Assembly (NCBI GenBank): GCA_004431415.1
Contig: QPMI01000130.1
Coordinates: forward strand, 29,930 to 93,929
DNA from: Cyanophora paradoxa CCMP329
Taxonomy: Eukaryota; Plantae; Glaucophyta
Direction: 5' to 3'
Length of the DNA stretch: 64,000 nt
The translations under genes were made by a program, and so were the position numbers. Shown here one piece after another: positions 7,283 to 64,000 of this stretch (position 1 is the stretch's first letter; every line of letters begins with the position of its first letter). The notes beneath the pieces were generated by a model that ran no database searches, had not been told where the DNA came from, and saw only the letters and a list, made by a program, of their open reading frames with translations.

Positions 7283-9328
7283 ATGAAGGTGCCTCGAGTT
7301 CAGGCTCAAGCCTTTCCTAGCGGTGCGCGCGAGCTCACGGCGTGCTCTCGCAGCGCGCAGCCCACTTGGCGGAAGAGTTCTGGTGCACAACGCTTACGGT
7401 CGTGGCCTCGTACGCCTCACGCGCGGCCGTACGTGGCCTCTATCTCGCACGCAGGTCTCGGATTTCGCAGGGGACTGCACTCTACGCGTCGAAAGCAGCG
7501 ATGAGCGGCGCGGAGCCCATATGGATGTTCGGGAGCTGCTACACACCGGAAGGCCCGCTGTCCACTGCGCGAGAGACCACTTCCTGCTGAAGCGCGCGCA
7601 GGCCCGCGCCGGGAGGTGGAGGATGACTCGGCGGGGGAGGAAGCGCAGCGGACGCCCCCACGCGGAGAAGCGGGGCGGGTCAATGCCACGGACGAGGAGC
7701 GCGCATATGAAGCGTTCCTGCGCGACTTCAGCATCCTCCCGTGGATGACGTATAGAAAGGTGCGGCGGCGGAGCTTGCGCGCGCCGCCGCGCGGCCCTCG
7801 TCTGACGGCGGCGGCATTCGGCGGGGGGCAGGGGTTCACAGGGATCGGCGGGGGGTCGCTAACGTCAGACGTGGGGTGGGGCTGCATGCTGCGCTCGGCC
7901 CAGATGATGCTCGCCACCGCACTCCTCCGCCTCCGCCTCGGCCGCGGTCCGCCCCCGCCGGTCCCCGCCCGCCCCGGCCGCCGAGCGCGGCGCCAGACTT
8001 CGACGTCGACGCCGACCCAGCGGCCTGCGCGCGCTTCGCCGAGGTGTGCCGCTGCGCCCGCGCGCGGCGCGGCGCGGTGCCGACGGGGCGCGGGGGGCAG
8101 GTGGTGCGGGAGTTCGCGGACTGCGACTGCGAGCGGGCGCCGCTCTCGCTGCACGCGATGGTCGCCACGGGCGCCGCCGGCGGCCTCAAGCGCGCCGGCG
8201 AGTGGTACGGGCCGTCCAGCGCCTGCCTGGTCCTCCGGTGCGCGCCGCGCCGCGGGGCGGGGCGGGGGCCGGAGTGCGGGGCGGGGCGCGGCGGGTGCCG
8301 AGGTGGACGTGCGGGCAGGGAGCTGGTGGAGCGGGCGCGCCCCGGCGGCCTCCGCGTCCTCCTCTCCGACGACGGCTGCATCTACCGCGACCAGGCGCCC
8401 CGCCCCGCCCCCCGCGCCCCCGCCCCGCCGCCCCGCGACGCCCCTCGCAGCTCCTCCCCTCCGCCGCCGCCTCTTCCTCCTCGGGGCCGGCCGCCTTCGA
8501 CCCCGTCCTCATCCTCGTCCCCGCCCGCCTCGGTGCCGCCCCCGCCGCGGCGCCGCCGCCGGGCCGGCTGACTCGGGGCAGGGCTCGAGGGCCTGAACCC
8601 CGTCTACGTGCCGGCGCTGCAGGCCCTCTACCGGCGCGCCTTGGGAGGCCCCTCGGCGCGCCCCTCGCCTGACGCCGCCGCGCAGCGTGCCCGAGTTCGT
8701 GGGGGTGCTTGGCGGCCGGCCCCGCTCCTCCCTCTACTTCGTCGCCTGCCAGGGTGCGGCCGGCCGCGGGGCGGCGGGGGCGGGCGGGGCAGGCCCTCAG
8801 GCGGGGGCGGCAGGGGGGAGGCGCTGTACCTCGACCCCCACACCACCCGCCCCGCCGTCCCCTGCCCCCACACCCCGCACCCGCCCCGCGCCCCGCCTTC
8901 CCCACGAGGCCCGCCCCGCCCGCCCCCGCCCCCCGCCGCCCCCGACGCCCCCGCAGAGCTACCGCTGCCGCACGCCGCGCCGCATGCCGCTCGCCGAGGC
9001 GCGCCGCCGTTCCCCGGGCGGGCCGCGCGGGGCGGGGCCGGGGCGACGGGGCGGGGGCGCAGCTGGACCCGTCGCTGGCGCTCGGCTTCCTCTGCTGCTC
9101 GCCCCGCGAGTTCGACGCCCTCTGCGCCCGCCTCCGCCAGGCCCGCCCCCTGCCTCCGCCCCGCCCCGCCCCACCGGGCCGGCGCGAGGCGGGGCGCAGC
9201 TGGCGGGGGCGCACGGGTGGTGAGCGTGGCAGAGGCGACGCCGGGGTACAAGCGGGGGCGGGCGCCGGGCGGGCGCCGGGGACTTCTGGGACGAGCGCGC
9301 CCTCGCCGAGGACGGCGACGACTTCTAG
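7283..9328 (+). CDS. ATG4: Autophagy cysteine protease (peptidase C54), multi-exon
   Basis: Exons give PIWMFGSCY, WMTYRK|GF, SDVGWGCMLRSAQMMLA (catalytic Cys), GEWYGPS, LILVPARLG, GVLGGRPRSSLYF, LYLDPH (Asp/His) and LDPSLALGF; acidic tail EDGDDF*. Confidence 0.95.
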
Positions 9329-9356
9329 GCCCGCCCCCGGGGCCCCCTCCACGCCC

Positions 9357-9393
<37 letters not shown>
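9357..9393. repeat. Poly(C) tract (~37 nt)
   Basis: Uninterrupted C run between the convergent ATG4 and SDR 3' ends. Confidence 0.9.
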
Positions 9394-9396
<3 letters not shown>

Positions 9397-9399: not shown

Positions 9400-11211
9400 G
9401 GCCCCCGCAGCCGCCGCCTCGCACACCCGCGTGCACTTTGTGCGTGTGCGTCGCGCGGCCGGCCGCGTCTGTACAGTCATCATCGAGGTCGAGGGGCGTG
9501 GGCGGGGCCCGTCAAGGGCGGGGGCGGGGGCGGGGCGGGGCGGGGCCGGCGAGGAAGTCGCGCTGGTACTCGCCAACGCCCGTCGCGTCGCAGATCGCGT
9601 CGTGCAGCCGCCTGCGCCCCCGCCCCCTCGCCCCCGCCCTCGCCGGCCCCGCGGGGCGGCGAGGGAACGCGCCCGAGGCCGAGGGAGACGCGCAGGAAGG
9701 TGCCCAGCGGCGCGATCGCCACCGCCGCGGGGAGGCACAGCGTGGTGCCGCCCTGTGGGGCGTGAGGGGTGCGGGGCGGGGCCGCGGCGGGGCGGGGGCG
9801 GGGCGGACGGCGGGAAGAGAGCGGGCGACGGCGCGGGCGATGTCGGGCGCCTCGGAGACGGGCAGCGCGAAGAAGCGCTGCCTGATCCCCTGCCCCCGCG
9901 TCGGCCCCCGAGGCGCGCCCCGCCCCGCCACGCACGCGCACCGGGAAGAGGGCTGTGCGCACGAAGAAGGGACAGACGGTGGTGCACTCGACGCCTGCGG
10001 GCCGCTCGCACGCGGGGCGGGGCGGGGCGGGGCGGCGGGTGCGGGCCGTGGGCGCCGGCGGCGCGGAGCTCGAGGCGGAGGGCCTCCATGAGGCCCACCG
10101 CCGCGAACTTGGACGCGCAGTAGTCCACCATCCCTGCCCCCAGGCCCCCGTCAGCCGTCAGCCCTTCAGATCGGCCCCCAGCGCGAGAATCCCCCATGCC
10201 CCCCCCGCTGCCCCGCTCGCCCCCGGCCCCGGGGCGGCACCAGGGACCCCGATGAGGCCAGCTGCGGAGGCGATGGAGACGATGTGGCCTGACGCTCGGC
10301 GGAGCATCTCCGGCAGGCAGCACTTGACTGTCCAGAAGTGCGCCGTCGCATTCACGGCCATCGTCCTGCGCCCCGCCCCTCGCGCCCCGCGGCGCCGGCC
10401 GGTGGGCAACCGCGGCGCACCGCTCGATCGACTCGTCGGGCGTGTCGAGAAGGGACGCGTGGCTCGCCACCCTGTGCCGGCGCGCCGCGGCCAGCTCGCA
10501 TCAGCCACTGCGGATCGGCAAGGTCTGGGGGGGGGGGCGCGCGCGCGCGTATGCGCAAGCGCACCCCGCGTTGTTCACCAGGATCGTAACGCCCTCGCCG
10601 TGGAAGCCCTGCCGCATGCGCATTCGAAGCAGCTCGCTGCAACAGCTGCTGAGCGGCGCACGAAGCAAGCGACAAATCACCTGCACGATTTTCTCGTGTG
10701 CCCGCCGCACCTGCGCGCATGCCCCGGACCCGCTCAACCCGGCCCGCCGACGCGCGCGTACGGCAGCTGTGCGGACGCGGCGCACGGCGGCGCGGTTTGT
10801 GACGTCGCAAACGTACGCGTTGATGAGCGCCTTGGGATACTTCGCTCGCATCTGGGACCCGCCGCGCGCTGTCAAGCGATGTAGACGTCGCGAGCCGCTA
10901 CGTACGCATCACAAGTGCACCTCAGTCACGCTGTCTGTCAGCTCGGGCTCAGAGATGTCGGTTATCGCGACGGATGCACCACGCGACGCCATCTGCCGCA
11001 GCGCAAGGTCAGCGCCCCTCGAGCTCACCTCCTCAGCGATCGCTCGGCCGATGCCGCGCGCTGCACCCGTGACCCATACGCGCTGACCTTGATAGTAGTT
11101 GCGCTGCTTTTCGCGTTGCGCGGCCCTGTACCTCGCCAGGCCGGCGACAGCGAGCGTTGCGGCGGCGCCGGCGCCTGCCAATGTCCATGGAGAGCGCAGG
11201 ATCCCGTCCAT
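9400..11211 (-). CDS. Short-chain dehydrogenase/reductase (RDH10/17beta-HSD11-like) with N-terminal membrane anchor
   Basis: VWVTGAARGIG, CDVT, ILVNNAG, GHIVSIASAAG, YCASK and TTVCPFFV motifs across exons; 3' end approximate. Confidence 0.92.
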
Positions 11212-11569: not shown

Positions 11570-12665
11570 ATGTCCGAGGAGGAGCTGGCGCCGGCGGACA
11601 ATCGCGAGTACGCTCGCAAGGAATATTGGGAAGGCGCGTCGTGATCGCCGTGAACGCGAGCCGCATGCGCAGCGCGGTGACTGCTAACGCTGATCCGAGC
11701 CGCATATATACGCAGCGCGGTACCAGAAGCAGATGATCGGAGAGGACGCGGGCGCGCAGCTCTATGAGTGGTTCGGGAGTCTCAAGTTTGATGACTTCAG
11801 GGAGATAGTCGAAAAGCACCTCCGCCCGTACGGCGCTGCCGCTCGCATCCTCCACCTGGGGTAAGCTTGAGCGGCGGCGCCGCCCCCCGCCGTGCGGCGG
11901 CGGGGCGCACCTGCGTTCGATCGCGGCGGCGGGTTTGCGAAGGTGCGGGAATAGCGCGCTTGGAGACCAGCTCTACGAGGCCGGCTACAAGAGCGTCGTG
12001 AACCTGGACTTCAGCGAGGCGCCCTCGGGCCTCTTCCGTGAACTCGCCTGCTCGGCCCGGCCCTCACGCACCGGGGCCCGCAGGTGTGCATCGAGCGCAT
12101 GGCGCGGCTCTACGCGCACCGCCCCGAGATGACCTGGGGTGCGCATGCACGATCGCGCTCGCCCCCCTGCCTTTACATCGCCGTCAGCCCGAGCGCCGCG
12201 CGCAAACGCAGTGGTAGGCGATGTGCTCGACCTGCGGGGCTTCGCGGACGGCTCCTTTGACTTCGCCATCGAGAAGGGTGCGCCCCGCCCCGCCCCGCGC
12301 GGCGGCCCCGCCGCCTCGGCCCTAGCTTCGCGCGGTCGCTCGAGCCCCCGGGCGCCGCAGGGACTATGGACGCGCTGATCACGGAGGAGGGCGAGAAGTG
12401 GAGTCCCTCGGAGCACGTCGCGGCGACGGCGCAGCGGATGGCGTCCGAGGCAGCCCGCGTCCTGCGTCCCGGCGGCGCCTACATGATGATCACCTTCTCC
12501 CAGGCCCGCCGCCGCGCCCTGGCGCTGCCCAGTAGCCTCGAGCTCCCCTGACACCTCCCGCAGCCCCACTTTCGAAAGCGCTTTCTGGAGCCGTCCTTCG
12601 CGAAGGTCGAGACGGTCAAGCTCGGCAGCGGCTTCCACTACTACATCTACATCTGCACGAAGTAG
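11570..12665 (+). CDS. EEF1A lysine methyltransferase 4-like (class I SAM methyltransferase), 7 exons
   Basis: Spliced EYWEARY, YEWF, ILHLGCGNS, NLDFSEVCI, FDFAIEKGTMDAL, RVLRPGG...ITFSQPHFRKRFL and FHYYIYICTK*. Confidence 0.92.
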
Positions 12666-13006: not shown

Positions 13007-13782
13007 ATGGCACAGCCGTCAGAGTCGCCGCCGCCCGTGCCAATCCCAGCGGGTCACGTGGAGCTCCGCTTCTTGATACCGGACTCGAGCAAGACCATCC
13101 ACCACATCTTGCCAAAAAGCAGCACTGTCCAGGCCGTCAAGGTGCGCGGGCGGTCACTGTCGCCCTCAAGCGCCCACGCCGCGCCTGCTGAACGTATACA
13201 CGGGACGCAGACGAAGATTGTTGGCGAGGTATGCCCCGCGCCGCCCCCGCGCGGGCCCGGGGTCGAACCTGTTTCGCATGCCCGCGCTGATCCCTGCCCA
13301 CAGTGGCCCGACACGCTCAGCCCCTTGCCCTCGAGGAGTCCCGATGTTTGTGCGTGCATGCGCGATCCTCGGCGATGCCGCGCGCCCGTCGTCGCGATGC
13401 ACCGCTCCAAGAGCTAACCCCGGAACAGTGAAGCTGATCCACGCGGGCAAGCTGCTAGACGCTGGTGCGCTGCCCGATTGCGCGGTTTACTCGCCCTCTT
13501 TGACGATGCCTGGCGCAGCGCGCACCCTCGAAGAATGCGGTGTGAAGGAGGTGTGCCCCCCTCTTCGCGCGCCGCGCTCGCGGCTCACCGAGTATCCTCT
13601 TCGCCCCCCCAGGGAGAGCGAGTATCAGTGCGCCCCTCTTCGCCCGCCGCGCTTGCGGCTCACCAGGGCCCCAGATGCATCTCGTGGTGAAGCCGTCGGC
13701 ACAAGGAGCGCCTCCGAAAGCTGCTCCCGGGGCGCCGCCGAAAGCCGCAGCCAACTCACGGTGCTCCTGCATCGTGTCTTAG
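13007..13782 (+). CDS. Membrane-anchored ubiquitin-fold protein (MUB/UBL3-like)
   Basis: VELRFL...STVQAVK|TKIVGE|WP...LKLIHAGKLLD...TLEEC...MHLVV; C-terminal CSCIVS* (CaaX with an upstream Cys). Confidence 0.9.
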
Positions 13783-14027: not shown

Positions 14028-15941
14028 TCAGGAGCGCTCGAGGGAGTAGGCGTCGCCGGGCGGGCCCCGGGCCTTGTCCAGCACCTGCCGGCCCCCGACC
14101 CCTTCAGCGGGGCGCGGCGCGGGGGGCGGGGCGGCGGGGGCGGGCCTTGCGGAGGGCGGCCCAGTCGTCGGGGGTGAGCTGGAGGCGGAGGGCGGCGGCG
14201 TTGGCGTCGGCGTGCGCGCTGCTGCGGATGCCGACGATGGGGTAGCAGACGCCCTCGCCGGAGCCGCCGGCGTCGAGGACGTAGCGGAGGGCGACGGCCG
14301 GCACGGAGCTCCCGTGCCGCTCCGCCACCGCCTTCATCGCCATCAGCAGCTCCTGCGCCCCGCGGCCGCTCGCCCCCCGCCGCGCCCCCCGCGCCGCCCC
14401 CAGCCGGGCGGCGCGGCGCGGCGCGGCGCGGGGCGGGCCTGGAACCAGGGCCAGCCGCCGGCGCTCTGGAGGATGGAGAAGTACATCCTCAGCGATGCCG
14501 TGTCGAGGAGGCGCCGGTCGGGGGCCGGCAGGCCGATCCAGCGCTCCGAGAGGAGCCCGCCGGCCACCGGCCTGGCCCCCCGCGGTCAGCGCCGGCCTGC
14601 GCGGGGGGGCGGGGGGGGGGGCCACCCGTAGCAGAGGAGGCGGATGGCCTTCTCGCGGGCGTAGGGGATGAGGGCCCCCTCGGGGCGCCGGTCCAGGATG
14701 CTGCGCCCCGGCGCCCCCCTCAGCGCCGCCCCCGGCCCCGTCTCGCCGAGCGCGCGCCGGCGTCGGCCTCGCGGGCACCTGTACTGGACCTGTGGGGGCG
14801 TTGGGGGCGGGCGGGGCGGGGGCGGGGCGGGCGGGGGCACCTGGTTGGCGACGACGGGCACGCCGGCCTCGACGATCTCCTGCGCCGCGCTCGCGCCCGG
14901 GGCGCGCGGGGGGGCGGGGGGCCGGGCGGCGCGCCCGCAGGTGCTTCGTGTCCATGTTCGTAGTTGCAACGGCCTTCAGCACGCCCCTCGCCCGGTAGCC
15001 CTCGAGCTGGCGGGGGCGTGAGCCAGGCGGGCGGGGGCGTCCAGGCCGCGGCGGCGCGCCATCCTCGCGACTTCGACCATGCCAGGTACCGAGTAGTCCC
15101 ACCTGGCGGAGGCGGCTCGGGGCGGCGGGGCGGGGGCGCGGGGGCGGGGCGGGGCGGGCCAGTGGAGCTGGACCATGTCGAGGGCCTCGAGCCCGAGGGC
15201 GGCGAGGCTGCGCCGCAGCGTCCGCTCCACCACCGCCGCCGTCGGCTGCTCCCGGAAGATGTTCGGCACGAGCTTCGTGAAGACCTGCACCCGCCCCGCC
15301 GCCTCCGCCCCCCGCTCCTTCCGGTACCTGCGCAGCCGCCGCGCTCGGCCCCGAGTGCGCAGGCCGAGAGCACTAACGGACGCAGCGCGTTCAGGGGCTA
15401 GCTAGCGCTGTGAGCCGTGAGCAGCCCGACCGGGGCGCCGGCGGCGCGGGCACGCGGGCCGGGCCGCGATGAGCGCTAGCGTAGATTTCAAGCTCGGGCC
15501 CGCGGGGCGCCGCACCGTCGGAGGAACTCGCCGATGACACTCTCGCTCGGACCGTAAATGTCTGCCGTATCGAACGTCGTATATCCTAGATCAGCGAGCT
15601 GCATCATGTCCTGCGCGTACGTCCGCGTCGGCGTAAGTGCTGCTGCGCGTGTACTAGCGCATTCAACGTGTAGTCAATCTCGCCATGTCCTGCACGTCCA
15701 GTGGCCCCGAGGACGCGCGCCCTAGGCCTGCGCCGGCGAACCTTAATAATTTTCTCAGGGTCAATCGGGCCGTGGCCGCCAGCCAGCTGCCAGCAGCCGC
15801 ATATTATCGAAGCGTGCGAAAGGCCTGCGCAAAGGGATTTACGAAGCGTATGACACAAAGTTTTACGGATGCACGTGCTCGCTGCGGCCGGGCTTGGTAC
15901 GAACCCAGCGGGCTTTCCGCGCTGCGAGGAATCAAAGCCAT
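14028..15941 (-). CDS. Aldo/keto reductase family protein
   Basis: GCWQLAGGHG, TTFDTADIYG, FTK, LDMVQLHWWDY, NQVQYSILDRRP, LLCYG..AGGLLS, VALRYVL and PIVG. Confidence 0.92.
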
Positions 15942-16315
15942 GCTCTCTTTCTCTCACGCGCGCTGCGCGCGCACAGCGGCTCGGTGAAACCGGGTGAATG
16001 CCGTGGGGGGTAGGCGAATCTGGTGCCGCAGGGGTATAACTGCCGGCTCCAGCTCTCGGGGTCTAGCCTAGTAGACGAACTGCCACGGTTAGATGGCGGG
16101 ACGGGGTGTTTACTCCGTCTCTCCGGCGGCGAGCGTACAGTTTGCGCAGCCGAGGATCATACTTCCCCGGTTCGAATTCGCGGCTGTACGCAGTACGCCC
16201 GGCCTAAGCTGACGGACTAGCAGCGTCTGGAGCCCGGCCGTGGCCGACAGTCTCGCGCAGCTGACGATGAGCCTGAAAGCCAGTACAGACCGACCTTTTC
16301 CCTTCCTTCCACGTA

Positions 16316-19300
16316 ATGGCGACGAAGTGCGTTTCTTTCTTTCCTTCTTTCCGCTTCTTTCCGGGCGCTTCCCGCTAGACCGCTAGTTCAACTGCCGCCC
16401 ACCGCCGGCCTCCCTCGGCGGCCGGCGTACGTAGCTAAGCTCCGCCGAGCGCCGACGGCCGACGGATGAGCTCGCCGCGTCGGTCTCGCATAAGTGTCAC
16501 GCTGACCCGCCGCTTGTGTAGTTCGAGCGCATCTTGAACGACCTCATCTGGCGAGCCCCCTGAGCCCAGCCCACGCCGCGCCGCTGACGCCATGCGCAGG
16601 AAACAGAAGGCATGCGGGGTGGGCGCTGCCGCCGGGGTGCGCGCCGGCTGAGCGGGGGGCGCAGATTGTGGTGTCGCTGGAGTCACTGCACGAGGACGTG
16701 CAGCGGCGGCTGGAGCAGCAGCCGTTGAAGGTCGTCGGGGTGTCGGCGGGCGGGCCCACGCCGGAGGCCTCCCCGCAGAAGAGCGCCCGGAGCGCCCGGA
16801 GCGCCCGGAGCGCGTGGGATGAGGAGGAGGGGCACCAGCGGCGCCTCTCCACGCACGCCCACGAGCTGCTCCTCGAGCAGAACCGCGCCATCCAGGACAG
16901 CATGAACGGCCTCAAGGAGGAGCAGCTCGCCCAGATCGACGCCCTCGTCATGATGTGCGCCCGCCCGCACGGCCCCGCGGCGCGGCGCGGCGCGGCGGGG
17001 CCGAGGGGCGGGGGCGGCAGGTACAAGCGGGAGCGGGATGCGGTGCGGGGCAGCCGCCTCTCGGTCACGCAGCCTGTCGAGCTGCCGCACGGTCCGGTGC
17101 GCAGCGCCCCGGCGGCCCCGTGCGGCGCCGGGCGAGGGGCGGCAGGGAGGGGAGGCGGGGCCCGGGCTGGGGGCGGTGCGGGAGGCGGAGGCGACGCCGC
17201 GGCTGCCCGACGCCGGCGGCCTGGGCTCGCCGCGCCTCACGAGCGCCCTCAAGCGCGCCGAGGAGTTCAGGGCCCTCGCCGCCGCCGCCCGCACGGGCCT
17301 CCAGCCGGCGCGCCCGCCCCGGGGCCTGCGCGGGGCGGGCGGGGCTGACGGGCGGGCAGCACGTGGAGCGCGACGAGGCGGTCCGGCGGTGCATCCGGCG
17401 CGCCGAGGCGGAGATCTCCGAGCTCCTCGAGCAGGCGCGCCCCCCCGGCGTCGATCCCGTCCTCTCCTTTCCCTTCCTTTCCCCTCCTTTTCTGAGGGCG
17501 GGGCAGGTCATCGAGGGCAAGAAGCAGCGCCGCGCCCTCGCCCAGAAGTGCGTCGCCCGCCCCGCCCGCCTCGCCTGTCCCGAGCGCCCCGCGCAGGCTC
17601 GAGGAGAAGGGCAGGGCGGAGCGGCGCGCGGAGGAGGAGGAGCTGCGGCGGGCGCGCGAGGAGGCGGAGGAGGAGGCGCGGCGGGCGCGCGAGGAGGCGG
17701 CGGAGGCGGGGGAGGAGGCGGCGGGGCTGCGGGGGGAGCTGGACGCGGCTCGGCAGGAGGCGGACGGGGCGCGCGAGGAGCGGGACGAGCTGCAGGCCGC
17801 CCTCCACGCCGCCCGCAACCAGGCCCGCCCGCCCCGCCCGCGCGCCCGACCGCCCCCGAGCCCCGCCCACGCGCGCCCCGCGCCCCTTCAGATCCGGAGC
17901 CTCTCGACGCGGCTGCCGGTGCTGCAGGAGGAGAACGAGAACCACTCCCTCGAGCGCGCCGCCGCCGCCGACCAGCGTCCGCCGCCCCGGCCCCGCCCCG
18001 CGCCGCGCCGGCGACGCCGACGGCGGAGGCAGAGAAGCGGCTGGCAGGCCGCCTGCGGGCGCTCGAGGAGGAGAACCGTTCCCTGCAGGCCCAGGCGCGC
18101 CCCGCCGGCCCCCGCGCGCCCTCGCCGGCGGCGCGCGTGAGGCGGGCCCAGGTGTCGGCCCTCTCGCAGCAGAGCCAGAGCCTCCTCGAGCAGAACAAGC
18201 GCCTCCTCTCGCACGTGCGCCCGCCGGCCCGGGCGGGGGCGGGGGCGGGGCGGGGCGGGCGGGGCGTGAGGGCGGGGGCGGCAGGGCCAGACGCTGGCGG
18301 AGCAGAACCAGCTGCTGGGGCTGGAGGCGAAGACGCTGCGGGTTCTGCTGGCGGAGCGGGAGGAGGGGGAGGAGGAGGGCGGGGCGGCCTCGGCCCTCGG
18401 GGGCGAGGCCGCCGCCAGCCCCGCCGAGGACGACCTCCCCGACGCCGTCCGCCCCGCCCCACACGCCCCCCCCCCGCCCCGCCCACACCCCGATGCGCCC
18501 GCCAGTCGGGCGCCTCGAGCGCGTCGGCGAGCCCGCAGCGGCGGGGCGGGCGGGCGCTGCCGCGGGCGGCGGCGGCGGAGACGCAGACGAGCGCGGCGAC
18601 GCTCGCCGGCATGCGCGACTCGGTCAACCGCTCGCAGGCGCGCTGCCGGCCGGGGGCACGCGGGGCGGCGTGGGCGAGGGGGCGGGGGCGCAGGTCTTCG
18701 CGGAGACGCGGCGCCTGCTCGAGGAGGAGGCCGCCGCCAAGCGCTCCGCCGCCGCCGCCGCCGAGCACTACCGGCCCGCCCCCGCCCGCCCGCCCCCGCC
18801 CGCCCCGCCGGGGAGAGGGCGAGCGGGGCGGGGGCGCAGGTGCGAGGCGGAGGCGCTGCGGGAGGCGGCGCGGACGGCGGAGGCCAAGGCGGAGGCGGCG
18901 CGCACGCAGCTCGCCAAGGCCTCCCGCGACCTCGCCGCCGCCCGCGCCGTCCGCCCCGCCCCGCCCCGCCCCGCGCGCCCCGGGGCGGGTGCGGGGGCCG
19001 ACGGGGCGGGCAGCGGGAGGAGGGCCTGCGGGAGCAGCTGCTCGAGGCGAACGCGGCGCTGGCGGACGAGCTCGCCAAGGGGCGCCGGGGCGGGGAGGCG
19101 GCGGAGCGGGAGGCCGGGGAGCGGGCGGCTGGGCGGCGGCAGTACGCGGAGGAGGTGGCGGCGGTGCGGGGGGCGCTGCGGGAGGTGACGGTGCAGCTCG
19201 AGTGGTGCGAGGGCGAGCTCGCGCGCGTCAAGGCCGACGCCCAGCGCCTCCGCACCGAGCGCGACCTCTACCGCGCCCAGGCCCGCCCCGCCCCCCCGCC

Positions 19301-20423
19301 CCGCCCCGCCCCGCCCCGCCCTCGCGCCGACACGGGGCAGGCCGACTCGCACCGGCGCGAGCTCGAGACGTACCGGGTGGACCTCCGCAAGGCGCGCCCC
19401 GGGGCGGGCGGGGGCGGCGGGGCGCCCCTCTGAGGCGCCGCCCCGCGCGCAGGTCAAGGCCCAGGTCCACGACATCCTCACCGCTCGCACCGCCGCCGCC
19501 GCCGCCTCCTCCGCCCCGCCCTCCCCCGCCGCCCCGCCCCCGCCCCGCCCCCGCTGCCGGCTGGACCGCCCCGGGCTCCCCAGCCCCTCCGGCCCCGCCC
19601 GCTCCCCGCCCGCCCGCGCCCCCGCGCCTCCGCCGCTTCCGCCGCCGCGCCAGAGCCGCCGCGCGGGGCGTACCCGCCCCGCCCCCGCCGCCGGCGTCGG
19701 GCGGGGAGCTGATCACGGCCGTCTCGAACCTGCCGCCGCGCTCGGCGCTGCCCTCGGCCGCGTACGGCGCGGCGGCGGCGGCCTCGCCGGGGCGGGGGGC
19801 GGCGGGAGTGGGCGCGGGCGGCCCTCGGGCTCGGGCTCCGAGGCGGCCGTGTCGCCCACTTCCCTCCCCCTCGCGGCCTCCGCCCGCGGCCCCACGCCCG
19901 CCCCTCCTCCGCCCAGCCGCGCCCCTCCGCCGGCCCCGCCTCGGTGCCCCCGCCGCCCGCCCCGAGCGCCCCTCGCGGCGGCGGCGGCGCTGAGTGATGG
20001 CGGCAGCGGGGCGCGGCGCCGCAGAGCCCCGGGGAGCGACACCCCATCTACGGCCTGCGGGAGGAGCGGGAGGGCGGGGCCCCGGGGCGGCGCTCCGACC
20101 CCCGCACCCCTACGCCTCGCCGGCGCCCCACGTCCAGGCGGCCGCGCCCCCGGCGCCGGGCGTCGCCGCCGGCTCGGCGGCGGCGACGGCGGCTGCGATC
20201 GCGGTCCGTGGGGGCGGGGCGCGGGGCGGGCGGGGGTGACGGGCGGGCGGGCAGGCGCTGCAGGCGGTGGACCGGGAGCGGGAGGCGCGGGAGCGGGCCC
20301 CCGTCTGGGAGCGCCTCTACAGCGACCGCGCCAAGCACGCCGCCCCCCGCGGCCCCCGCCCCTTCTAGCCTCGCCCCTCCCCAGCCGCCCTCCCCCGCAC
20401 GGCTGCAGCCCTCCGCGCGGTGA
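16316..20423 (+). CDS. Long coiled-coil protein of unknown function, many exons
   Basis: Spliced E/R/A/Q heptad-rich exons (e.g. LAGRLRALEEENRSLQAQ|VSALSQQSQSLLEQNKRLL), low-complexity tail with VWERLY; consistent intron signals; ends approximate. Confidence 0.7.
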
Positions 20424-23158: not shown

Positions 23159-24151
23159 CTCCGCGCTCGCGCGGCGCTCGAGGCACCCGTTGCTCGCGCG
23201 CACTGTGAGAAATGCGTCTGTGCACGTGAGATCGGGCAGACTTCGACAAGGTTTACTTCGGCAAATTCTTACCGTCACCACCGCGCGTCTGCCAAGGCTG
23301 ATGCGAATCTCGGCGAGCTCGCCAGCTGCAGCAGATCCAGTGACCGCGGCCGTCGGACGTGTCTGACCTGACTCGGCGAGGCTTTGAGGGCGGTGCCACT
23401 GGGCCACCGTGGCAGCTGCAGCCTGCAGGTCGATCCGATAATAAGCTGGCCGACGTACAAGCTCGAGGGTAGTAGTAGTCGTGATCGATGATACGTACAG
23501 TTGCACCGTGGCACGTTAAACGTATATTTCAAGTTTCGGTAAAGTAGTACTCGCCGAGTCGCACAGCGCGCAGCTTCGAATTCAAGGGTGTATGCGTACG
23601 TATACGTATACGTACTACGGTATCGATTTCGATCCGATGATCGCGATATCGATATCGCGTTATCGATACACGTATATATATACGCGTACGCCCGGCTAAT
23701 GCGACTTAACTGCGAGTACGTGTATATATATATATATAACGCGTGCAGCTAATATACTATGATTCGCATTTGCGAATACGTATACGTGTACTAGTACTGC
23801 TGGTATACGTACTAGCTATATAGATCTAGACTGCGAATACTGTATTAATACGGATCCGGATACGTATATGTGAACGTAATTCAACGTATACGTAAACGTT
23901 TACGCATAAACGTAAACGTACTACGGTACCCGGTATACGTACGCGTGTGCGGACTAGCTGCGCAATACTAGTCGACGTCCGATTTGCAATCACCGCAGTG
24001 ACGTCGACGTCCGACGGTCGACTCATGAGTCATGATCAGCCTGGCAGTCCGAGGTAGGGCTGGGCACAGTCCGACTTTTCCCCCACCGGGTCGGTGGGCC
24101 CGCTGACTGTTACCCACCGGTGGCGGTCGGTGGAGGTGGGGGTACGTGCTA

Positions 24152-31721: not shown

Positions 31722-31752
<31 letters not shown>

Positions 31753-51300: not shown

Positions 51301-52549
51301 CTCCGACGACGACCGCCAGATCCTCGTCCGCCCCCGCCGCCCCCGCCCCGCCCCGCCCCCCCGCCCTCACCCCGCCCCCGCCCCCCCGCAGCTCAACATG
51401 CTCCTCAAGTGCGCCGACCTCGGCAACGCAGGTGCCGCCGCCCCTGCGCGCCGGGGCCCCGCCGGGCGGGCCGGGGCGTGACGGGTGGGGGCCTGCAGCG
51501 CGGCCGCTGCGGACGTACATGGCGTGGGCCGGCTGGGTCATGGACGAGTTCTGGGAGCAGGGTGCGCCGCCCCCGCCCTCCCCCCGCGCCGGGCGGGGCG
51601 GGGGCGTGAGCGGGGCGGGGCAGGGGACGAGGAGCGGCGGCGCGGGCTGCCGCTGAGCCCCTGGATGGACCGCGAGAAGCCCGAGGTCGGCAAGTGCCAG
51701 AGGTGCCGCCCGCGCCCCGCCCGCCCCGCCCCCTCGCCCCGCGCGCCGCTGAGGCGGGCCCCGCAGCGGCTTCATCGACTTCCTCGTGGAGCCCCTCTAC
51801 AGGTCGGTCCTCTTAGCTCCGCCCCGCCCCGCGCGGCGGCGAGCGGGGCGCAGCTCCTGGGCCGCCTGCTTCCCTGCTTTCCAGCCGCACCTCGCCCTCG
51901 TCCGCGCCAACCGCGCCCACTGGCGCAAGGCCCGCGCCCCGCCCCCGCCCCCGCCGGCCCGCCGCCCCGCCGAGCGCCGGCGCAGGTGGAGGAGGGCGAG
52001 CTCGCGCCGGCGGGGCCCGCCCCGAGGCCCGCTCGCCGCCCGCCGCGCCGGCAGCGGCGGGGGCGGAGTCGGTGCGGGGGCGTCGGGGCCGACGGGGACG
52101 CGGGGCCCGCGGCGGGCGTCGGTGCTGCCGGCGCTGCTGCTGCAGGGCGGCGTCCGCCCCGCCGCCCCGCCCTCCCTCGAGGACCTCTCCGCGCCCCGCA
52201 GCCGCCCCCCGCCGAGGCCGCACGCCGCGGCGCCCCGCCCCCGCCCCCGCGTGGGGCAGCGACCCGGCGCCCCGCCCTTCCATCTCCCGCTCCGCCTCCT
52301 CCCGCCTGCCGCCCCTCCTCGCCACCGACCCCCCGCTCCTCGCCCCGCCCCCGCCCCCGCCCCGCCCCCGCCCCCGCCCCGCCCCGCCCCGCCCCCGCCC
52401 CCGCCCCCGCCTCCGCCTCCGGCGCCCCGCCGGCGCTCGAGAGCGTTAGCCCCCTCTCGCCCCCTGGGCCCCTCGGGACGGAGTCCGAGCCCCCCGCTGC
52501 GGCGGACTCCGCAGCTGCGAGGGGGGGATTCGAGCGCGATGGCGAGTAG
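48326..52549 (+). CDS. Membrane-bound class I cyclic nucleotide phosphodiesterase
   Basis: NSYHNATHACDV, HDMGHEGRNNNF, YNDRSVLENYH, LATD, KCADLGN, EFWEQGDEE, QSGFIDFLVEPLY; hydrophobic multi-TM block at 49.0-49.6 kb with apparent frameshifts. Confidence 0.93.
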
Positions 52550-54288: not shown

Positions 54289-55271
54289 GGATTCACATGC
54301 AGTAGCACGAAATTGAAAAGCTCGCAAGCTTGTCTGATCAGTGAATTCGAACGTTCCGGACCTCCGGTCCGTCGCCCGAAATTACTAAAAGTTAGTGGAC
54401 TCCGGGAGCCCGAAATTATCATAGTATAACTAACTTAGTAAGAATCTGCATGCTTACCGTAGTACATTTTTAAAAGCACAACCGAATTCGAATTTCGAAG
54501 TGTCACAGTGACTGTGACAGTGTTAAACGTAACCTTAAAACGTTAACGTTAACGTTAACGTTTCTTTATAATTAATTACTCTCTAACTTAGTAGAGTCTA
54601 CCGGGTAGCCTAGTCGATCTATGGCGGTTACAGTTTTTAACTGACGCATTTAAATTTTGCACTGGCATGCCTCAAAATGCATGGATGGGATGACGGCAGG
54701 TGGCTCTCGAACTTACTTCCTCCACGGACGCTCCGTCATGGGCTCGACTCGAGCTCGCGGCTAGCTTCGAGGCTTGTGCTTCCCCTGGCTTGCTACCGCC
54801 GCTACCGCGGTAGCTGCGCGCGTCGCGCGCTGCAGCTGCGCATGCAGATCTAGAAGGGAGCAGCTAGGAGGGAGCTTCGCAGCTGTCGGAGCCTGCAGCA
54901 GTAGCATCCCATCCGCATGCGCAGCTGCTGAACGCGTGGATGTGCACGTGCTAGCGCTTCTTTACTGCACCGGCCTGCAGCTGGAGCTGTTTCCCCGTTG
55001 TCACCGACGTCGCCAAAGCTCCATCCGACGGGCTTGTGCCGCTGTGAATCCTACAAACCACACGACACAAGCGCGGCGACAGTCGTCTCCATCAGTCGTG
55101 CACGCGTCGCAAGCACGCAGAGCGCAAGGCGGTGCCGCTGGCCCGGAGGTCGTCGGCGGGCGTTACGTGCGTCGTCGGAGGACCTGCGATGTGCGCGCGC
55201 TGCACAGCTGGATCGAGAATCGCCCGCTGACCTGCGTGACCCAAACAGAGCTCGAAGCAAGGTCGGAGAAG

Positions 55272-56765
55272 ATGCTGATGGCCTTTCCTCGCCCCAAGGA
55301 GGCAGGCCCGTGGGGAGGCGAGAGCAACTGCTTCGACTCGGTCCCGATGTCTTGCCGGAGCTCCGGCGCCAGCGCGGCCTCTGACCGCGACATGCTCGTG
55401 GTCCGCGCCCCCGGCCCCGCCGGCCGCGCTGCGCCCCGGCGAGCCCCGGCGCAGGCGCGGATGGCGGCGGAGGAGGCGCTTCGGATGAGCTACCTCTCGG
55501 GCTCGCCCGTGGACCCCGTGCTGGACGCGTACGCGGCCCAGGCGGCCGCTGCGGCGGCGGCCGCCGCCGTGCGCGCCGTCAAGAGCGGGGCCGCGGGGCG
55601 CGGCCTCGCGGGCGCCTCGTGCGCCTCGTCGGAGACGTCCTCGGTGGTGTCGCCGCCGGAGCGCTGCTCGTCGCCGACCTCGTCGGCCGGCAGCGACGAG
55701 CGCCTCGCCCCGGGGCCCGCCGGCGCCGCGCGCGAGGCCGCCGTCGTCTCCCCGACCGCCGGCGTCGACCCCCTCGGGCCCTCCCCCACCAACAAGCACG
55801 CCGAGCTCTACAAGGTCACAGCCCCCCGCCCCCGCGCCCCGCTGCGGCGGCGGCGCTGACGGGGCGGCGGCAGACGGAGATGTGCCGCTCGTGGAACGAG
55901 TCGGGGACGTGCCGGTACGGGATGAAGTGCCAGTTCGCGCACGGCGCGGACGAGCTGCGGCCCGTGCAGCGCCACCCGCGCTACAAGTCCCAGCACTGCA
56001 TCTCCTTCCACACCATCGGCACCTGCGCCTACGGCAAGCGCTGCCGCTTCTCCCACGAGCCCGGCCCCGCCGCCGCCGCCGCCGTCGCCGCCGCGGCCGC
56101 CGCGGCCGCCGCGGGGAGCGCGCCGGACGCCGCCAAGGGCCCCTCGCCCCCGATCTCCCCCACGGCCCTCCCCGCCGTCCCCGCCGCCCCGGCCCCGCAC
56201 CCGCGCCGGCTCCCGCCTTGGCACCGGCCCCGGTCCCGGCCCCGGCCGGTGTGTCGGGCCCGACGGCGACGGCGCAGGCGAAGCTGGCGGCCGCGGCGGC
56301 GGCAGCCGCCGCCGCGGCCGCGCAGTGGGAGCGGCAGGCGCGTGAGGTGCAGCAGCTGCAGGCGCAGCAGGCGGCGTACGAGCAGGCGATGGCGCGCGCG
56401 CACCGCCACATCCTCATCCACCAGCAGGCCATCGCCTCGGGCCAGCCCCTCGACCCCGCCCAGCACGCCGCCGCCGCCGCCGCCCTCGCCGCCGCTGCCA
56501 AGGCCGCCGCTGCCGCCGCCGCCGCCGCCGCCGCCAACGCCGGCGTGCCGGTGCCGGCGCCGCCGCCGGCCGGGGCCGGGGTGCCGTCGCCGCTGGGGCG
56601 GGCTCGCCGGCGAAGGGCCTCTCGCCGCGGAGCACGGGGGAGGGGCCGGGGGAGGCGGGGCCCGGCGGGGAGCGGTCGCCGGGGAGCGGGAGCGAGGACG
56701 AGGACGGCTCGGGGCGGCGCCTCCCCATCTTCGCCCGCCTCGAGCAGCTCTCCGTCCGCCCCTGA
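55272..56765 (+). CDS. Tandem CCCH zinc-finger protein (TIS11/ZFP36-like), paralog 2
   Basis: LYK|[61 protein letters not shown]; C-terminal [17 protein letters not shown] reached after apparent frameshifts. Confidence 0.93.
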
Positions 56766-57826
56766 GCGCCCCCGCCGGCCCCGGGGCCCCGCCCGCTGCC
56801 CGGGGCCGAGACCCCCTCGGCTTCGATTTTCGATACCCCTGCATACCGTACCGTACCTGCCTCGGACCGTTTCGGACGACCCGGACTCTCCATGCATTTC
56901 AAGCGATCAATTCAAGCGCGAAGGATACAATACGTGGCACACTAGTATATGTTGTGGTTTGATTCGCTCCCTCTAGGTTAGTCCTCCTAAATGTTTTTTA
57001 TCTTTTTTCCGGCGTTTTTGCGCACTATACAGCCCTCTCGGTTTTATGACGAGAGTGACGATCCTATGAAGCTTATTTCAGTTCTTCCTTTGTGGTATTC
57101 ATAGTCGTGACCATGATGCTAGGCAGCCGTTGGCGGACATCACTCGGTCTTCGGTCTTTTATAATTAGCTAGCCGCATTCCTTTTTATCTCGATCGGGCC
57201 TTATCTTTGCGGTGGAGCTCTAGTAGAGCTCCTTTGGTTGTTAGGCACTGTGCGTATACTATCATAGTATAGGGTCCGATGGTCGTAGTATGCCTGGTTA
57301 TATGTCCTTGACTTATTCTAAAGTATGAATAATGGTATCAAATTGTCAGTGTCGTGCACGGTGCTCGAGTCGCGCAGCGACTCTCGCCGCCGTGACTGCT
57401 TCCGAAGTTCCAGGCTCCAGCTGATTCCGAATTTCCGAGTTCCAATTCGAAGGGTGAAAACTTGAAACATCGTCACGGCGCCCTCAGGGCCACTGGGCCC
57501 GGCCATGGGGTCCCGCGGTCCAACGGTTTAGATCTTCGAGTGCCGCATGCGCAGTGCGCGTGCGCCGCGACCGTCGGACGCTTCCGAAGTTCCGAATTCG
57601 ATCGCGAGGTCCCGAGCCTCGAAGCCTTTGAAGGCTTGCGCTTCAACTTGGCAACTCGCGCTTCGAGGCCCCGAGGCCTCTGCTGATCATGAGAGTCCCC
57701 GGGGGGACCCGCCCCGACGCCGCGACAGTCTGACGGCGTCTGATGGCTCGCGCTCTCCGAGTTTCCTTTCGTCTCAGAGTCTCCGCATGCGTGCATCGGT
57801 GTCAACACTCAACAGCGTGACACGCC

Positions 57827-58093: not shown

Positions 58094-59410
58094 CTAGAGG
58101 GCTGCGGCGCCCGGGTGCTGGGCCTCGAAGGCGTCGATGAGCTCCTGCAGCTCGCCCTTCACCCGCGCCGCGTCCTGCCCGCCCCCGCCGTCAGCCGCGC
58201 CGCCCAGCACCGCCCCCTCGCCGAGAGGGGCGAGGTGGTGGAGAGGGCCAAGGAGCGAGGGGGGCGGTGGAGGTGTGGGGGGACGGGGGCGACGGGGGCG
58301 GGGGCGGGGCCGGCGGGAGCGCACGGCGTCGAGGACGCGGTCGATGAAAAGGGTCCCCGACACGTGGTCGAACCTGCCCCCGCCACGCCCCCGCTCGCCC
58401 CCCGGCGCGGCGCGGGCAGGCGGGCGGGCGGGCGGGCGGGCGGGGCGGACTCGTGCTGGAAGATGCGGGCGCGCCAGCCGGAGAGGTTCATGGTGAAGGG
58501 CTTGCCGGTCACGTCCTGCGCCTCGATGCGCACCCCGACGTGCCGCTGCGCGCCCGCGCCGCCTCGTCACTGGGGCGGGGCGGGCGGGCGGGGCGGGGCG
58601 GGCGGGGCGGGCGGGGCGGGGCGGGGCGGGGCGGGGCGGGGCGGGGCGGACGACGACGTCGAAGTTGATGCCGGGGAAGGAGAGGCAGCCCTCGGGCTCG
58701 ACGTCCTTCTTCTTCGACGTGCTCGTCAGCACCGGGTTGCAGAGCACGACCTCCGGGCCCCTGCGCCCCGCCGCCGCCCCGCCCCGCTCGCCCCGCCGGC
58801 CCGCACGCCCCCGGGTTCCGCCCCGCGCACTTCTTGGGGTCCCCCTCGGGGTTGAAGACGAGCAGGCGGAGGTTCACGCCGACCTGCGCCGCCGGCTCGG
58901 GGGCGGCGCGGCGGCGAGCAGCGAGCGGGGCACCTGCGGGGCGGCGAGGCCGACGCCGTCGGTCCTGTACATCGCCTCGAACATGCGCTCGACGAGCTTC
59001 GCGAGATTCGCGTCGAAGACCCGGATCTCCTCGTTCTTCGCGCGCAGCCGCGGGTCCGGATACTTCACGATTTCCAGCGGGGCCTCCAGCAGCCGCGAGT
59101 CAATGGAACCGTCTGCCGCCGCGAGATCGACGATCGGCGCGCGCGGGCACAGGCGGGGCGCGCCGGTCCACGCACCCTCCTTCACCGGCGGGAAGCTCAC
59201 GGCGGACATCACCACCGGCGCCGCGGCGCTCGCGGACCACCTCACGCTGCATCCAAAGCGAGCCTGGCGCCCCAGGAACTCCGAGCGGAGCGCGGCGCCA
59301 GCCCGACGGGGCGCGCTGGCTCTGCAGGCCGCCACGGCGCGGGCCGCCGCCGCGGCGCGGGGGGATGCCGCAGCCAGCCCGAGGGGCGCAGAGACAGCGA
59401 AACAAGCCAT
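58094..59410 (-). CDS. def: Peptide deformylase (PDF1B-type), plastid-targeted
   Basis: [24 protein letters not shown] and QHEFDHVSG; Ala/Arg/Ser-rich transit peptide MACFAVSAP. Confidence 0.96.
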
Positions 59411-59611: not shown

Positions 59612-62600
59612 ATGGGGTCAGCCCTAAGCAACAACTCTCAGCGCGGGCGCGTCGTGACGAAGGGACCTGCAACGTCTACGCCCGGCGAGTCTCGTGGCGC
59701 TGGCCGGACCTCACGCAGCTCCGATGGGAACGCGTCGGAAGGGAAGCAGTCCCTGGGAGCATCTCTCTCCGAAAAAGCGGCATCTAAGAGCCACGACTAC
59801 GTGGACTTGCAGCAGAGGCTTTCGCACCTGCGACTCCAGCGCTCGGATGGCACCTCGCCGGCCGGCAGCGCCAATGCCTCTCCAGCCGCAACGCAGACTC
59901 TAACGCAGGCGAACGGCCTGCAAGTGCCCCCGCCCAAGGTGGAAACCCTCAGCATACCCGCGCCACCGCCGGCCGAACCCCCTGCGACGCTGCAACCTGC
60001 CGCACTCGACCCCAGGCTCGCGCCGCCAGAAGTGCGCCACCTCCCGCGCCGCGCTCCCCACGCCTTGGACCGAAGCGCGTGCGCCAGCCTCCAGAGCACT
60101 TCGGCGAAGAGGAGGAGGAGGAGGAGGCGGCGCACGATGACGGCTACTACACGTGCGCCCTCCTTCCGCTTCCTTATCCCCCGCGCTGCGGTGACGGGGC
60201 CGCGCCGGGCGCGGCGGGCGGCAGGGAGGAGGAAAGGAGGAGGAGGCGGGGGCAGAGCGCGCAGCGGGTGGAGGCGCCGCCGCAGCCGATCCGGTGGCAG
60301 CGGGGCGAGATGCTCGGCGCCGGCGCCTTCGGGAAGGTCTTCCTCGGCCTCAACGTCGACACCGGCGAGCTCATCGCCATCAAGCAGGCCCGCCCCGCCC
60401 CGCCCCGCCCTCCCCCGTGCTCCGCCCCGCGGCGAGCCGCCGGCGCAGGTCTCCTACGCCGGCATCAACAAGCAGAAGGCGGAGGAGGTGCGCGGGGCCG
60501 GCCGCGCAGGAGGCGCCGGGGCCGGCGGGGCCGGCTGGGGGCTGACAGGGGCGGCGGGGGCAGCACGTGGCGGCGCTGGAGGTGGAGATCGCGCTGCTGA
60601 AGCAGCTGCAGCACGAGAACATCGTCCGCTACGTCGGCTCCGAGACAGACCCCGAGCACCAGGAGATACGGTCCGCCCGCCCCGCCCTGCCCCGCCCCCT
60701 CCACGCCCCCGCCCCTCGCCTCACGCACCACCCCGCAGCATCTTCCTGGAGTACGTTCCGGGCGGCTCCATCGCCTCCCTCATCTCCAAGGCCCGCCCGC
60801 CCCGCCGCCGCCCCGCCGCCTGCGCGCCGGCTCGGGGGGCGAGGCGGGGCGGGGCGCAGTTCGGGCACCTGACGGAGTCGGTGATCCGGGTCTACACGCG
60901 GCAGCTGCTCCTCGGCCTCGACTACCTCCACTCCCACCAGATCATGCACCGCGGTCCGCCGGCCCCGCCGCCCCCGGCCCGCCCGGCTGCTGGCCGTGAC
61001 CCCGGGCGGGGGCCTCGCGGGGGCAGACATCAAGGGGGCGAACATCCTGGTGGACAACACGGGGACGATCAAGCTGGCGGACTTCGGGGCGTCGAAGAAG
61101 CTCGCGGAGATCATGACGATCTCGGACGGGCACAAGTCGCTGCGCGGCACGCCCTACTGGATGGCCCCCGAGGTCATCAAGCAGACCGGCCACGGCCGCC
61201 AGGCCGACATCTGGTCCGTCGGCTGCACCGTCCTCGAGATGGCCACCGGCGCGCCCCGCCCCGCCCCGCGCCGCGCCGGCGGCCGCTGAGGGCTCGGGCG
61301 CAGGGAAGCCGCCGTGGTCGCAGTTCCAGTCGCAGGTGTCGGCGCTCTTCCACATCGCGTCGGCCAAGGGCCCGCCCCCCATCCCCGAGCACCTCTCCGC
61401 CGACGCCCACGACTTCCTCATGCTCTGCTTCCGCCGGCCCGCCCCGCCCCCGCCCCCGCCGGCCCCGCCGGCCCCGCCACGCGCGCCCCGCTGACGGCGC
61501 GGCGCAGGAGCCCGAAGGAGCGCCCGAACGCCTCGCGCCTGCTCACGCACCCCTTCGTCGCGAACGTGCCCGGGGCGGCCCGCGCGCGCCCCGGCCCCCG
61601 CCCCAAGCTACGACCGGGCGGCCTACGGGGGCCCCCTCTACGAGGCGGAGACGATCCTCGAGGACGAGGCGGCCGAGGCCGAGGCCGAGGCCGCCGCCGC
61701 CGCCGCCGCCGCCGCCGCCCAGCCCCCGCCCGCCCCGCCGGCACCGGCGCACCCTCCCCGGCCTCCGGCGGCCCTGGCCCGCGGTCGCGGGGCGGCCCCG
61801 GGGCGCCCGGGCGGGGGCGCGCGGGGAGCGTGCGGAGAGCGTGCCAGTGCCGGGGCGGCAGGGGGCGAGATCCTCGGCTTCCTCGCCGACAAGGTCCAGC
61901 GCGACTACGACGTCCGCCCCGCCCCCGCGCCCGCCCCGCCCCCGCCCGCCCGCGCTCACGCCCCCGCAGTCCCTCACCGACGGCCGCTTCCGGGACGGGT
62001 ACGCGTCGATCCTGCGGCAGCACGCGGCGGAGCGCGGGGAGGGGCCACCGGCCCCGGGCAGCGGCCGCCGCCAGCTGAGCGCCCCCCGGGCCCGGCCCCA
62101 GCGGCGGCTCCCCGCACCCGCCCCGCGGCAACGGCTACGGCTACGGGGCGCCCCCGCCGCGCGGCGGCCAGCTGCCGCCGCTGCGGGCGGCGCCCCCGCG
62201 CCCTCGAGCGGCATGGGCGAGTCGCCTTCGGGGCGGGCGGGGCGGGCGGGGCCCGGCCCCGGCCCCGGGGCGGGCGGGGGCGGGCGGCTGGCGGTGGCGC
62301 TGCCGGAGGAGGGGGACTGGGAGAGGGAGGCGCGGCGGCGGCAGTACGTGGCCGAGCTCGACGCCGAGCTGCAGCGCATGCGCGACGCCCGCCGCCAGCA
62401 GCAGCAGCAGCAGCTCCAGCAGGGCCCGCCCCAGCCGCAGGGCCCCGCCGGCGGGGACTGGGGCGGGGCGCGGGGGAGGGCGGGGGAGCCCGTACGGCGG
62501 GGCAGCCCCTTCAGCGCCGGCGGCAGCGGCCGCAGCGGCCACAGCGGCCGCAGCGGCGGGTCGCGCGCGGGCGGAGGCTGGGCGCCCCCGGGGCGGCGGG

Positions 62601-62697
62601 GGAGGGGGCGGCGTGGGGCCGGGAGGGCCCCGAGGCGCCGTGGCGGAACGCGCCGGGGCGGCCCCGCGAGGTCGACCCCCAGTACGGCGCCTACTAG
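59612..62697 (+). CDS. MAP kinase kinase kinase, STE11/MEKK family (NPK1/ANP-like)
   Basis: [72 protein letters not shown] and [20 protein letters not shown]. Confidence 0.96.
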
Positions 62698-62979
62698 CAG
62701 GGGCCCGCAGGCCCCGCAGCAGCTCCCGTCCCCCGCCCCCGCCCGCCTCCTGGCCTCCCCGCGCAGCGAAGCGCTCGCCCCCCGCCCCCGTCCCCGTCCC
62801 TTCCCCGTCCCGTTCCTGCAGCAACTCGCTATCTCTCCTGCAACCCGCTTTGTATGTGTCTGTGAAGAAGGAAGTGCACGTGATTAGAAAGCACGCGGTG
62901 GGCGCTGAGCGGCTCTGTATCACGTCGAGAGCTGGAGCACAGAGCGGGCAGCGGAGAGAGGTCGGGGCGGGGCGGGGGG

Positions 62980-64000
62980 CTACTGGGAGGCGAGCCAGGC
63001 GTTGAGGGCGGCGAGGCGCTTGTCGAGGGGCACGGCGGCGGGGACGTCGAGGCCCTCCGCCTCCGCCAGCTTCACCAGCTTCAGCGCCGCCCCCACGTCC
63101 GGGCCCTGCCCGCCCCGTCCCGCCCCGCCCTCAGCACGCGCCCCGGCAGAGCCGGCGCGGGGGCGGGTGCGGGGGCGGCCTCGCCTGGAGCTGGCCGGTG
63201 AGGGCGAGGCGGAGGGGCATGAAGAGCTTCTTGCCCTTGCGGCCCGTCTCGGCCTGGAGGCCCTTCACGAACTCCTTCCACTTGGCCGTGTCCAGCTGCT
63301 GCTCGGCCCCCAGCGCCCCCGCCTCGTACTGCGCCACCACCCTGCCCCCGCCCCGCCTCGGCGCGGGGAGGGGCGGGGGGGCGGGGGCGGGCGCGCGTCC
63401 TGGCGAATTCGACGAAGGCGTCCTCGAGGAGAGCGGCGCGCCCGTCGGCGCCCGGCGTCTCCCCGCGCATCGTCGCCTCCAGCGGGTACGAGACCGCCGA
63501 CTCCAGCGCCCCGTTCGCGTCCGTCACCTGCCGCCCCGCCCCGCCCCCTCAGCCCCCGCCCCGCCGGGCGCCCGGGACCCAGGGGCCCGGGGGCCGCGCG
63601 GGCCTTCTCGAGGGAGTCCTTGAAGAGGGCGACGGCGGCCGACAGGAACGGGCTCGCCTGCGCGCCGCCGCGGCTGTCGGAGGGGGCCGGGCGGGATGGG
63701 GCGGGGCGGGGCGGGGCGGACGGCGGGGTCCATGGAGTCGGCGCCGCGGACGATGCCGGCCTTGCCCCACTCCTCTGCCATCGTCTTCGCCACCTGCGCC
63801 CGCCCCCCGCCACCGCCCCGCGTCGGCCGCCGCAGCGAGGGGGGGTCGGGGGGCGGGGCGGCGGGGCGGGGCGGGGCGGGCCTGGTCGGCGGGGAGGGAC
63901 TTGACGTGCTGGCCGTTGACCCAGCGCAGCTTCGCCTGGTCGAAGATCGCCGCGCTCTTCGTGATCCGGTCCAGCGAGAACGCTGCCCCCGGCCCCGCCC
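62980..64000 (-). CDS. gltX: Glutamyl-tRNA synthetase, organellar/bacterial type (3' part; continues beyond the window)
   Basis: FSLDRITKSAAIFDQAKLRWVNGQH and [23 protein letters not shown]. Confidence 0.93.

Follow-up and report, generated by a model that had tools for sequence, protein, structure and literature searches.

Genes and introns of the window

The material analysed was a single stretch of 64 kb from contig tig00000507 of Cyanophora paradoxa (the window), and all intron counts given here are local rather than genome-wide. The genome of this alga has a G+C content of 67.6%, 9.2 introns per gene and a mean intron length of 86 bp, and its published gene models were produced with STAR plus BRAKER1/Augustus under guidance by RNA-seq (PMC6704402). 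Two genomic frames of the window were exactly identical over their exons to EukProt proteins, both of Cyanophora paradoxa: a MAP3K (tig00000507_g1789.t1, P0121) and a sacsin-like protein (tig00000507_g1784.t1, P0122). Positions 39359-41100 encode the C-terminal part of the latter. Mapping these published proteins back to the window fixed 47 junctions. Introns of 18 genes were identified with a parser that gave T and C at position +2 equal scores, and after curation by hand 170 were kept. About 60 parser calls that fell within low-complexity sequence or where the frame was shifted were excluded as unsafe, and GC donors following a base other than G may be undercounted. The 129 introns inside conserved domains or published models are referred to as the conserved tier. 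Queries for homology searches were database proteins, single exons or genomic frames without splicing.

The gene-poor start of the window showed by eye GC-rich tandem arrays at 1320-2490 (unit of about 120 bp) and 5330-5690. The gene at 7283-9328 (plus strand), which from its motifs we take to be ATG4-like, had GC donors in 5 of its 11 curated introns. It is followed by a short-chain dehydrogenase-like gene (9470-10850, minus strand; GC donors in 2 of 7 introns), the methyltransferase gene discussed below, a ubiquitin-fold (MUB-like) gene (13007-13782, plus strand; 0 of 6, introns of lower GC content) and an aldo-keto reductase-like gene (14030-15690, minus strand; 5 of 9). Introns 13551-13612 and 13628-13674 of the ubiquitin-fold gene appeared by eye to be copies of each other, which suggests a local duplication around a 15-nt exon. 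A coiled-coil gene at 16269-20370 (plus strand), its introns placed by frame continuity only, had GC donors in 10 of 17 introns and an ankyrin-repeat gene at 29787-36630 (plus strand) in 11 of 29; when the ankyrin protein of Cyanophora itself was sought in the databases, bacterial relatives only were returned. The initial annotation had pointed to additional GC introns in the ATG4, ankyrin and coiled-coil genes. Two TIS11-type genes for tandem CCCH zinc fingers lie at 22000-23170 (minus strand) and 55260-56766 (plus strand); both have an intron in a matching position ahead of the first finger, with a GC donor in one gene and a GT donor in the other.

A nuclear phycobilisome rod-core linker gene (CpcG; 37360-38812, minus strand), recognised by a match to PF00427, contains introns and encodes an N-terminal extension that is likely to be a transit peptide; a nuclear gene of this kind points to a glaucophyte. 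All of its placeable introns begin with GT (GC donors in 0 of 3 curated introns) and have a GC content below the average. The sacsin/NO VEIN-like model g1784 (39359-46341, minus strand) had GC donors in 9 of 33 curated introns. This model includes two long, atypical GT introns at 43254-43125 and 41141-41023 (minus strand) where the parser found coding sequence instead, interrupted by a frameshift at about 43254; a stop at about 41060 was noticed by eye. These anomalies suggest an assembly indel and the fusion of a sacsin-like gene with a NO VEIN C-terminal-like gene. Further GC donors were found in one of five introns of a SpoU methylase gene (46560-47800, minus strand), in none of five of a peptide deformylase gene (58095-59391, minus strand) and in three of four curated introns of the 3' part of a glutamyl-tRNA synthetase gene (62981-64000, minus strand), which has one ambiguous donor in addition. 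The intron concerned, 63405-63335 (minus strand), allows two readings one residue apart, one with a GA donor that follows exonic CAG and starts at 63399, the other with a GC donor that follows exonic C and starts at 63396. It is thus a possible GA-AG intron.

Frequency of GC-AG introns and support for their junctions

Among the 170 curated introns 60 (35%; CI 29-43%) were of the GC-AG type and 110 had GT donors. The GC share was 32% in the conserved tier (41/129) and 28% in the published models g1789 and g1784 (13 of 47 introns). This is a 35-fold excess over the usual level for the curated introns as a whole, and against a background of 1% the count in the conserved tier has a probability of about 1e-49. 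Frequent GC-AG introns in this window are confirmed as a real observation. It had been proposed that GC-AG introns are nearly as common as GT-AG introns; for the whole window this does not hold, since parity is rejected (p = 1.5e-4) and GC donors are about half as frequent as GT donors, not equal to them.

The initial annotation had counted 10 GC donors among 23 introns in stretches of a methyltransferase gene, a MAP3K gene and a PDE gene, and our recount was identical. All ten introns lie on the plus strand, begin with GC, finish with CAG and follow an exonic G as claimed, and a single acceptor had to be shifted by 1 nt. In the methyltransferase gene these are intron 1 (11634-11715, AAG/GCGCGT), the retention of which leads to a stop and for which no in-frame GT-AG alternative lies in range, intron 3 (12019-12083, GAG/GCGCCC), where the closest in-frame GT would remove seven codons, and intron 6 (12504-12563, CAG/GCCCGC), where retention again leads to a stop and there is no GT alternative. 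The PDE gene has GC-AG introns at 50634-50696 (CAG/GCCCGC) and 50809-50863 (TCG/GCCCGC) in its catalytic region and at 51930-51985 (AAG/GCCCGC) after it. The second of these was corrected to end at 50863 rather than 50864 because the frame with the latter runs into a stop; the exon that follows matches positions 36-71 of PF00233. The kinase domain of the MAP3K gene contains four, at 60388-60448 (CAG/GCCCGC), 60791-60859 (AAG/GCCCGC), 61249-61303 (CCG/GCGCGC) and 61437-61507 (CCG/GCCCGC). All four are used by the published model g1789, and across each of them the kinase alignment is gapless to MEKK2 or ASK1: the first junction to both, the second to MEKK2, and the fourth to ASK1 with a one-residue gap to MEKK2. 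The second intron, with 69 nt, is in frame, and its gapless junction means that there is no 23-residue insert in the kinase.

Could these introns be retained, or spliced from GT donors nearby? Retention of the ten introns would cause a frame shift, a stop or the insertion of 21-23 low-complexity residues inside a catalytic domain, and removal at the GC-AG boundaries restores the protein. In-frame GT-AG alternatives closer than or at 6 nt do not exist for any of the GC introns, and 30 of the 60 have none even when the range is widened to 36 nt at the donor and 30 nt at the acceptor. At none of the 13 GC junctions of the published models does a GT-AG alternative give the same protein. Both possibilities were rejected on these grounds. 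The broader suspicion would be that the junctions are wrong or the assembly is systematically in error, the true donors being GT. It is not without basis, as the assembly has indels in GC-rich stretches, the parser permitted GC donors and curation was done by hand. We nevertheless find an artefact of this kind very hard to credit. Quite apart from the lack of GT-AG alternatives, the junctions are gapless against solved kinases and, at the GC junction at 45317 of the sacsin-like gene, against a distant homologue. Sequencing errors, moreover, would be independent of the exonic bases at -1 and -2, contrary to the context rules described below. Finally, the RNA-seq-guided published models share the GC junctions, which is indirect support for GC splicing.

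Context and composition of the donors

GC donors are strongly dependent on the end of the preceding exon. G at -1 was found in 58 of 60 GC donors vs 67 of 110 GT donors (p = 5e-8), and exonic AG in 44 of 60 vs 26 of 110 (p = 5e-10), a rule that also holds in the published models alone (p = 6e-4 for AG). Expressed as GC share, this amounts to 63% after AG (44/70), compared with 25% where another NG precedes the donor and 4% (2/45) where the last exonic base is not G. Only after exonic AG, then, where they form the majority, are GC donors as common as had been proposed for all introns. That donors after a base other than G are nearly always GT had been recognised correctly, and the exception noted at the time is real (31571-31634 in the ankyrin gene, with A at -1) but not the sole one: a second lies at 43432-43379 in g1784 (minus strand, T at -1). 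On the intron side, +5G was present in 42 of 43 GT donors without -1G vs 45 of 67 with it (p = 6e-5), so the GT donors show the normal two-class trade-off between -1G and +5G. GC donors mostly have both, -1G and +5G occurring together in 51 of 60 vs 45 of 110 GT donors. They thereby follow the rule known for human GC donors, which have a consensus G at -1 and +5; the trade-off seen in the GT donors is the two-class U5/U6 pattern described in the same work (PMC11732430).

Pairing was scored against the canonical 11-mer U1 arm, which is not the Cyanophora sequence. Exonic pairing of the U1/U5 type extended over 2.28 of 3 positions in GC donors and 1.49 in GT donors (p = 3e-10), and intronic pairing to the U1 arm did not differ (1.36 vs 1.56, p = 0.12). 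A strong match at +3, +4 and +6, which is typical of the GC-AG class without defining it, was not found: per-position pairing was 0.26, 0.03 and 0.07, and equally poor in GT donors. Since the weak intronic match is alike in both classes, it is a trait of all donors and not of GC donors. Human GC-AG donors also keep A at +3 and +4 and T at +6, which the Cyanophora donors of both classes lack. The statement that GC donors are without a strong U1 match elsewhere in the site is accordingly true for +3, +4 and +6, but it overlooks the gain on the exon side and the equal intronic weakness of GT donors. With the canonical U1 arm the predicted duplex has about -3.3 to -3.5 kcal/mol in both classes, whereas a GC donor with the human-type consensus gives -9.3. 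Pairing to a canonical arm is thus very weak, and some other factor must compensate for it.

The introns are short, with a median of approximately 60 nt, and their bodies contain only 6% A and 8% T (about 87% G+C). The 5' halves have 60% C, the 3' halves 42% C and 42% G. From the least to the most GC-rich introns the GC share rises from 18% to 45% (p = 0.003 among donors with -1G). The neutral expectation, taken from the C/(C+T) ratio that follows G within intron bodies, is 0.925, far above the overall GC share of 0.35. The observed share is lower than expected in every context, and thus a preference for T at +2 persists, slight after AG and pronounced after a base other than G. Acceptors have C at -3 (CAG) in 99% and G at -4 in 80% of cases, without a pyrimidine tract. 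Every intron has an A between -35 and -9, with a peak at -11 to -20 in words like CTGAC, CTCAC or CCGAC, as expected of a U2-type branch point near the acceptor; CTVA occurs in 36 of 60 GC and 52 of 110 GT introns. Intron hairpins were rejected, as the introns do not fold better than their base shuffles (mean z of +0.28) and GC and GT introns do not differ, although this is a weak test.

Assignment of the GC introns to the U12 class was rejected, as no GC donor has A at +3 and T at +4 followed by CCT (the extended RTATCCT donor). The GT intron 31237-31294 (plus strand) has a donor reading GTATCCCC, which is near the U12-type GTATCCTT, and a branch region that is not clearly U12-like. For Cyanophora 77 minor introns have been reported (PMC10639083).

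The donors mostly read GYSCGC and not GTRAGT (105/170 vs 2/170), as the initial annotation had observed. The reason for this may be sought in the recognition machinery. A co-evolved U1 5' arm, a U6 ACAGA box with its m6A, or U1C, LUC7, PRP8 or SNRNP27 could match GYSCGC and read +2 as any pyrimidine. Such a change might account for the 35-fold excess of GC donors and for the very weak predicted pairing to canonical U1, and it draws its best argument from positions +4 and +6, where C is found in 90% and 79% of donors. The frequency of +4C given +5G is 126/140 vs 67% expected (p = 2e-10), and +6C exceeds its context-matched background (p = 2e-5). In the least GC-rich introns +4C still reaches 19/24 vs a background of 43%, therefore drift alone is no explanation. 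This excess of +4C and +6C is the single feature that could signal a changed contact of U1 or U6. The architecture of -1G and +5G, however, is the canonical one, and +2 is not free, with GC in 2 of 45 donors after non-G and below the neutral 92% everywhere. A recognition system altered in this way is therefore rather unlikely, and we regard it as quite doubtful that changes in snRNAs or proteins, such as an altered U1 5' arm or an altered U6 ACAGA box or methylation of that box, match the +4C/+6C donor and make GYSCGC a co-evolved code. An Rfam scan of the stretches 16100-37300 and 41200-64000 of the window revealed no snRNA. Of the rewired code that tolerates either pyrimidine at +2, as first proposed, there remains that C at +2 is far above 1% and depends on -1G; GC donors nevertheless compensate for it with -1G and +5G and with their exonic pairing.

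Origin of the GC donors and comparison with other lineages

The explanation that we favour, and consider likely, is that strong GC pressure acts on introns whose U2-type splicing is ordinary apart from a relaxed stringency at +2. GC-biased mutation or conversion, reflected in intron bodies of about 87% G+C, would often change T at +2 to C. Such a GC donor would be accepted by the spliceosome provided that both flanks anchor the site: on the exon side by -1G, mostly as AG, through U1 and U5 loop 1, and on the intron side by +5G through C4 of U1 and then the U6 ACAGA box. Short length, the CAG acceptor and a branch A located 11-20 nt before it may favour intron definition and lessen the demands on the donor. 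T at +2 would still be under selection, weak after exonic AG and strong after non-G. The counts, the context rules, the GC gradient and the branch and acceptor signals were observed directly, whereas canonical snRNAs and a simple relaxation of proofreading at +2 are what we infer from them.

GC donors might also have been delivered in bulk by transposons of the introner type. In Micromonas pusilla 79% of the GC donors lie in D-IE1 introns (PMC4815162), and in the window the repeats at the junctions are longer in GC introns (3.05 vs 1.75 nt). The latter is explained by the fact that AG exon ends match AG intron ends. There is no near-identical intron family in the window; the most similar pairs do not exceed 86% identity, are made up of low-complexity C/G runs and mix GT and GC introns. 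Nor are GC introns clustered by gene beyond the effect of exon context (p = 0.24). An introner origin was rejected on this window-level test of pairwise identity and is highly improbable.

Relaxed U2-type splicing also agrees with what is known from other GC-rich algae, in which frequent GC donors have been found before, and Cyanophora follows the usual rules for introns that start with GC. One parallel is the haptophyte Emiliania huxleyi, with a genome of 65% GC, GC donors as a major class and a canonical AG acceptor; its share of GC donors, checked by RT-PCR and attributed to GC content, is higher (56-61% vs approximately 35%), and unlike Cyanophora it has about 4% GA donors (PMC4028052). 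Micromonas pusilla CCMP1545 is, like Cyanophora, an archaeplastid alga with frequent GC donors (25.6%), which were missed by GT-only gene prediction. There, however, they make up 43.5% in introner introns and 9.7% in regular introns, whereas no introner families were seen in the Cyanophora window (PMC4815162). In the pelagophytes Aureococcus anophagefferens and Pelagomonas calceolata 14-17% of introns are GC-AG vs 0.32% in a low-GC relative; the link to high genome GC is shared with Cyanophora, but the pelagophyte genomes are intron-poor and their GC-AG share is lower (bioRxiv 10.1101/2024.10.30.620910). Human GC-AG introns of the U2 type resemble those of Cyanophora in having G at -1 and +5, which in the human case has been read as cooperative contacts to U5 loop 1 and the U6 ACAGA box, but comprise only 0.87% of donors (PMC11732430).

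We found no earlier report of GC-AG introns or other peculiarities of splice donors for Cyanophora or the glaucophytes in a search confined largely to open literature, which did not extend to the genome paper of 2012. GC donors are not mentioned in the text and accessible supplements of the more recent genome paper (PMC6704402). In practical terms, gene finders restricted to GT would misplace about one third of the junctions in the model glaucophyte genome. Cyanophora represents a further independent lineage, after haptophytes, pelagophytes and Micromonas, in which extreme GC content goes together with common GC donors, apparently without introners. It would offer thousands of natural sites at which to measure the part of -1G/-2A and +5G in making C at +2 acceptable, and the unexplained preference for +4C would allow a direct test of the U6 m6A/+4 model of donor recognition. 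Should a co-evolved code prove true, the glaucophyte would be a natural test case for how positions +2 and +4 are read.
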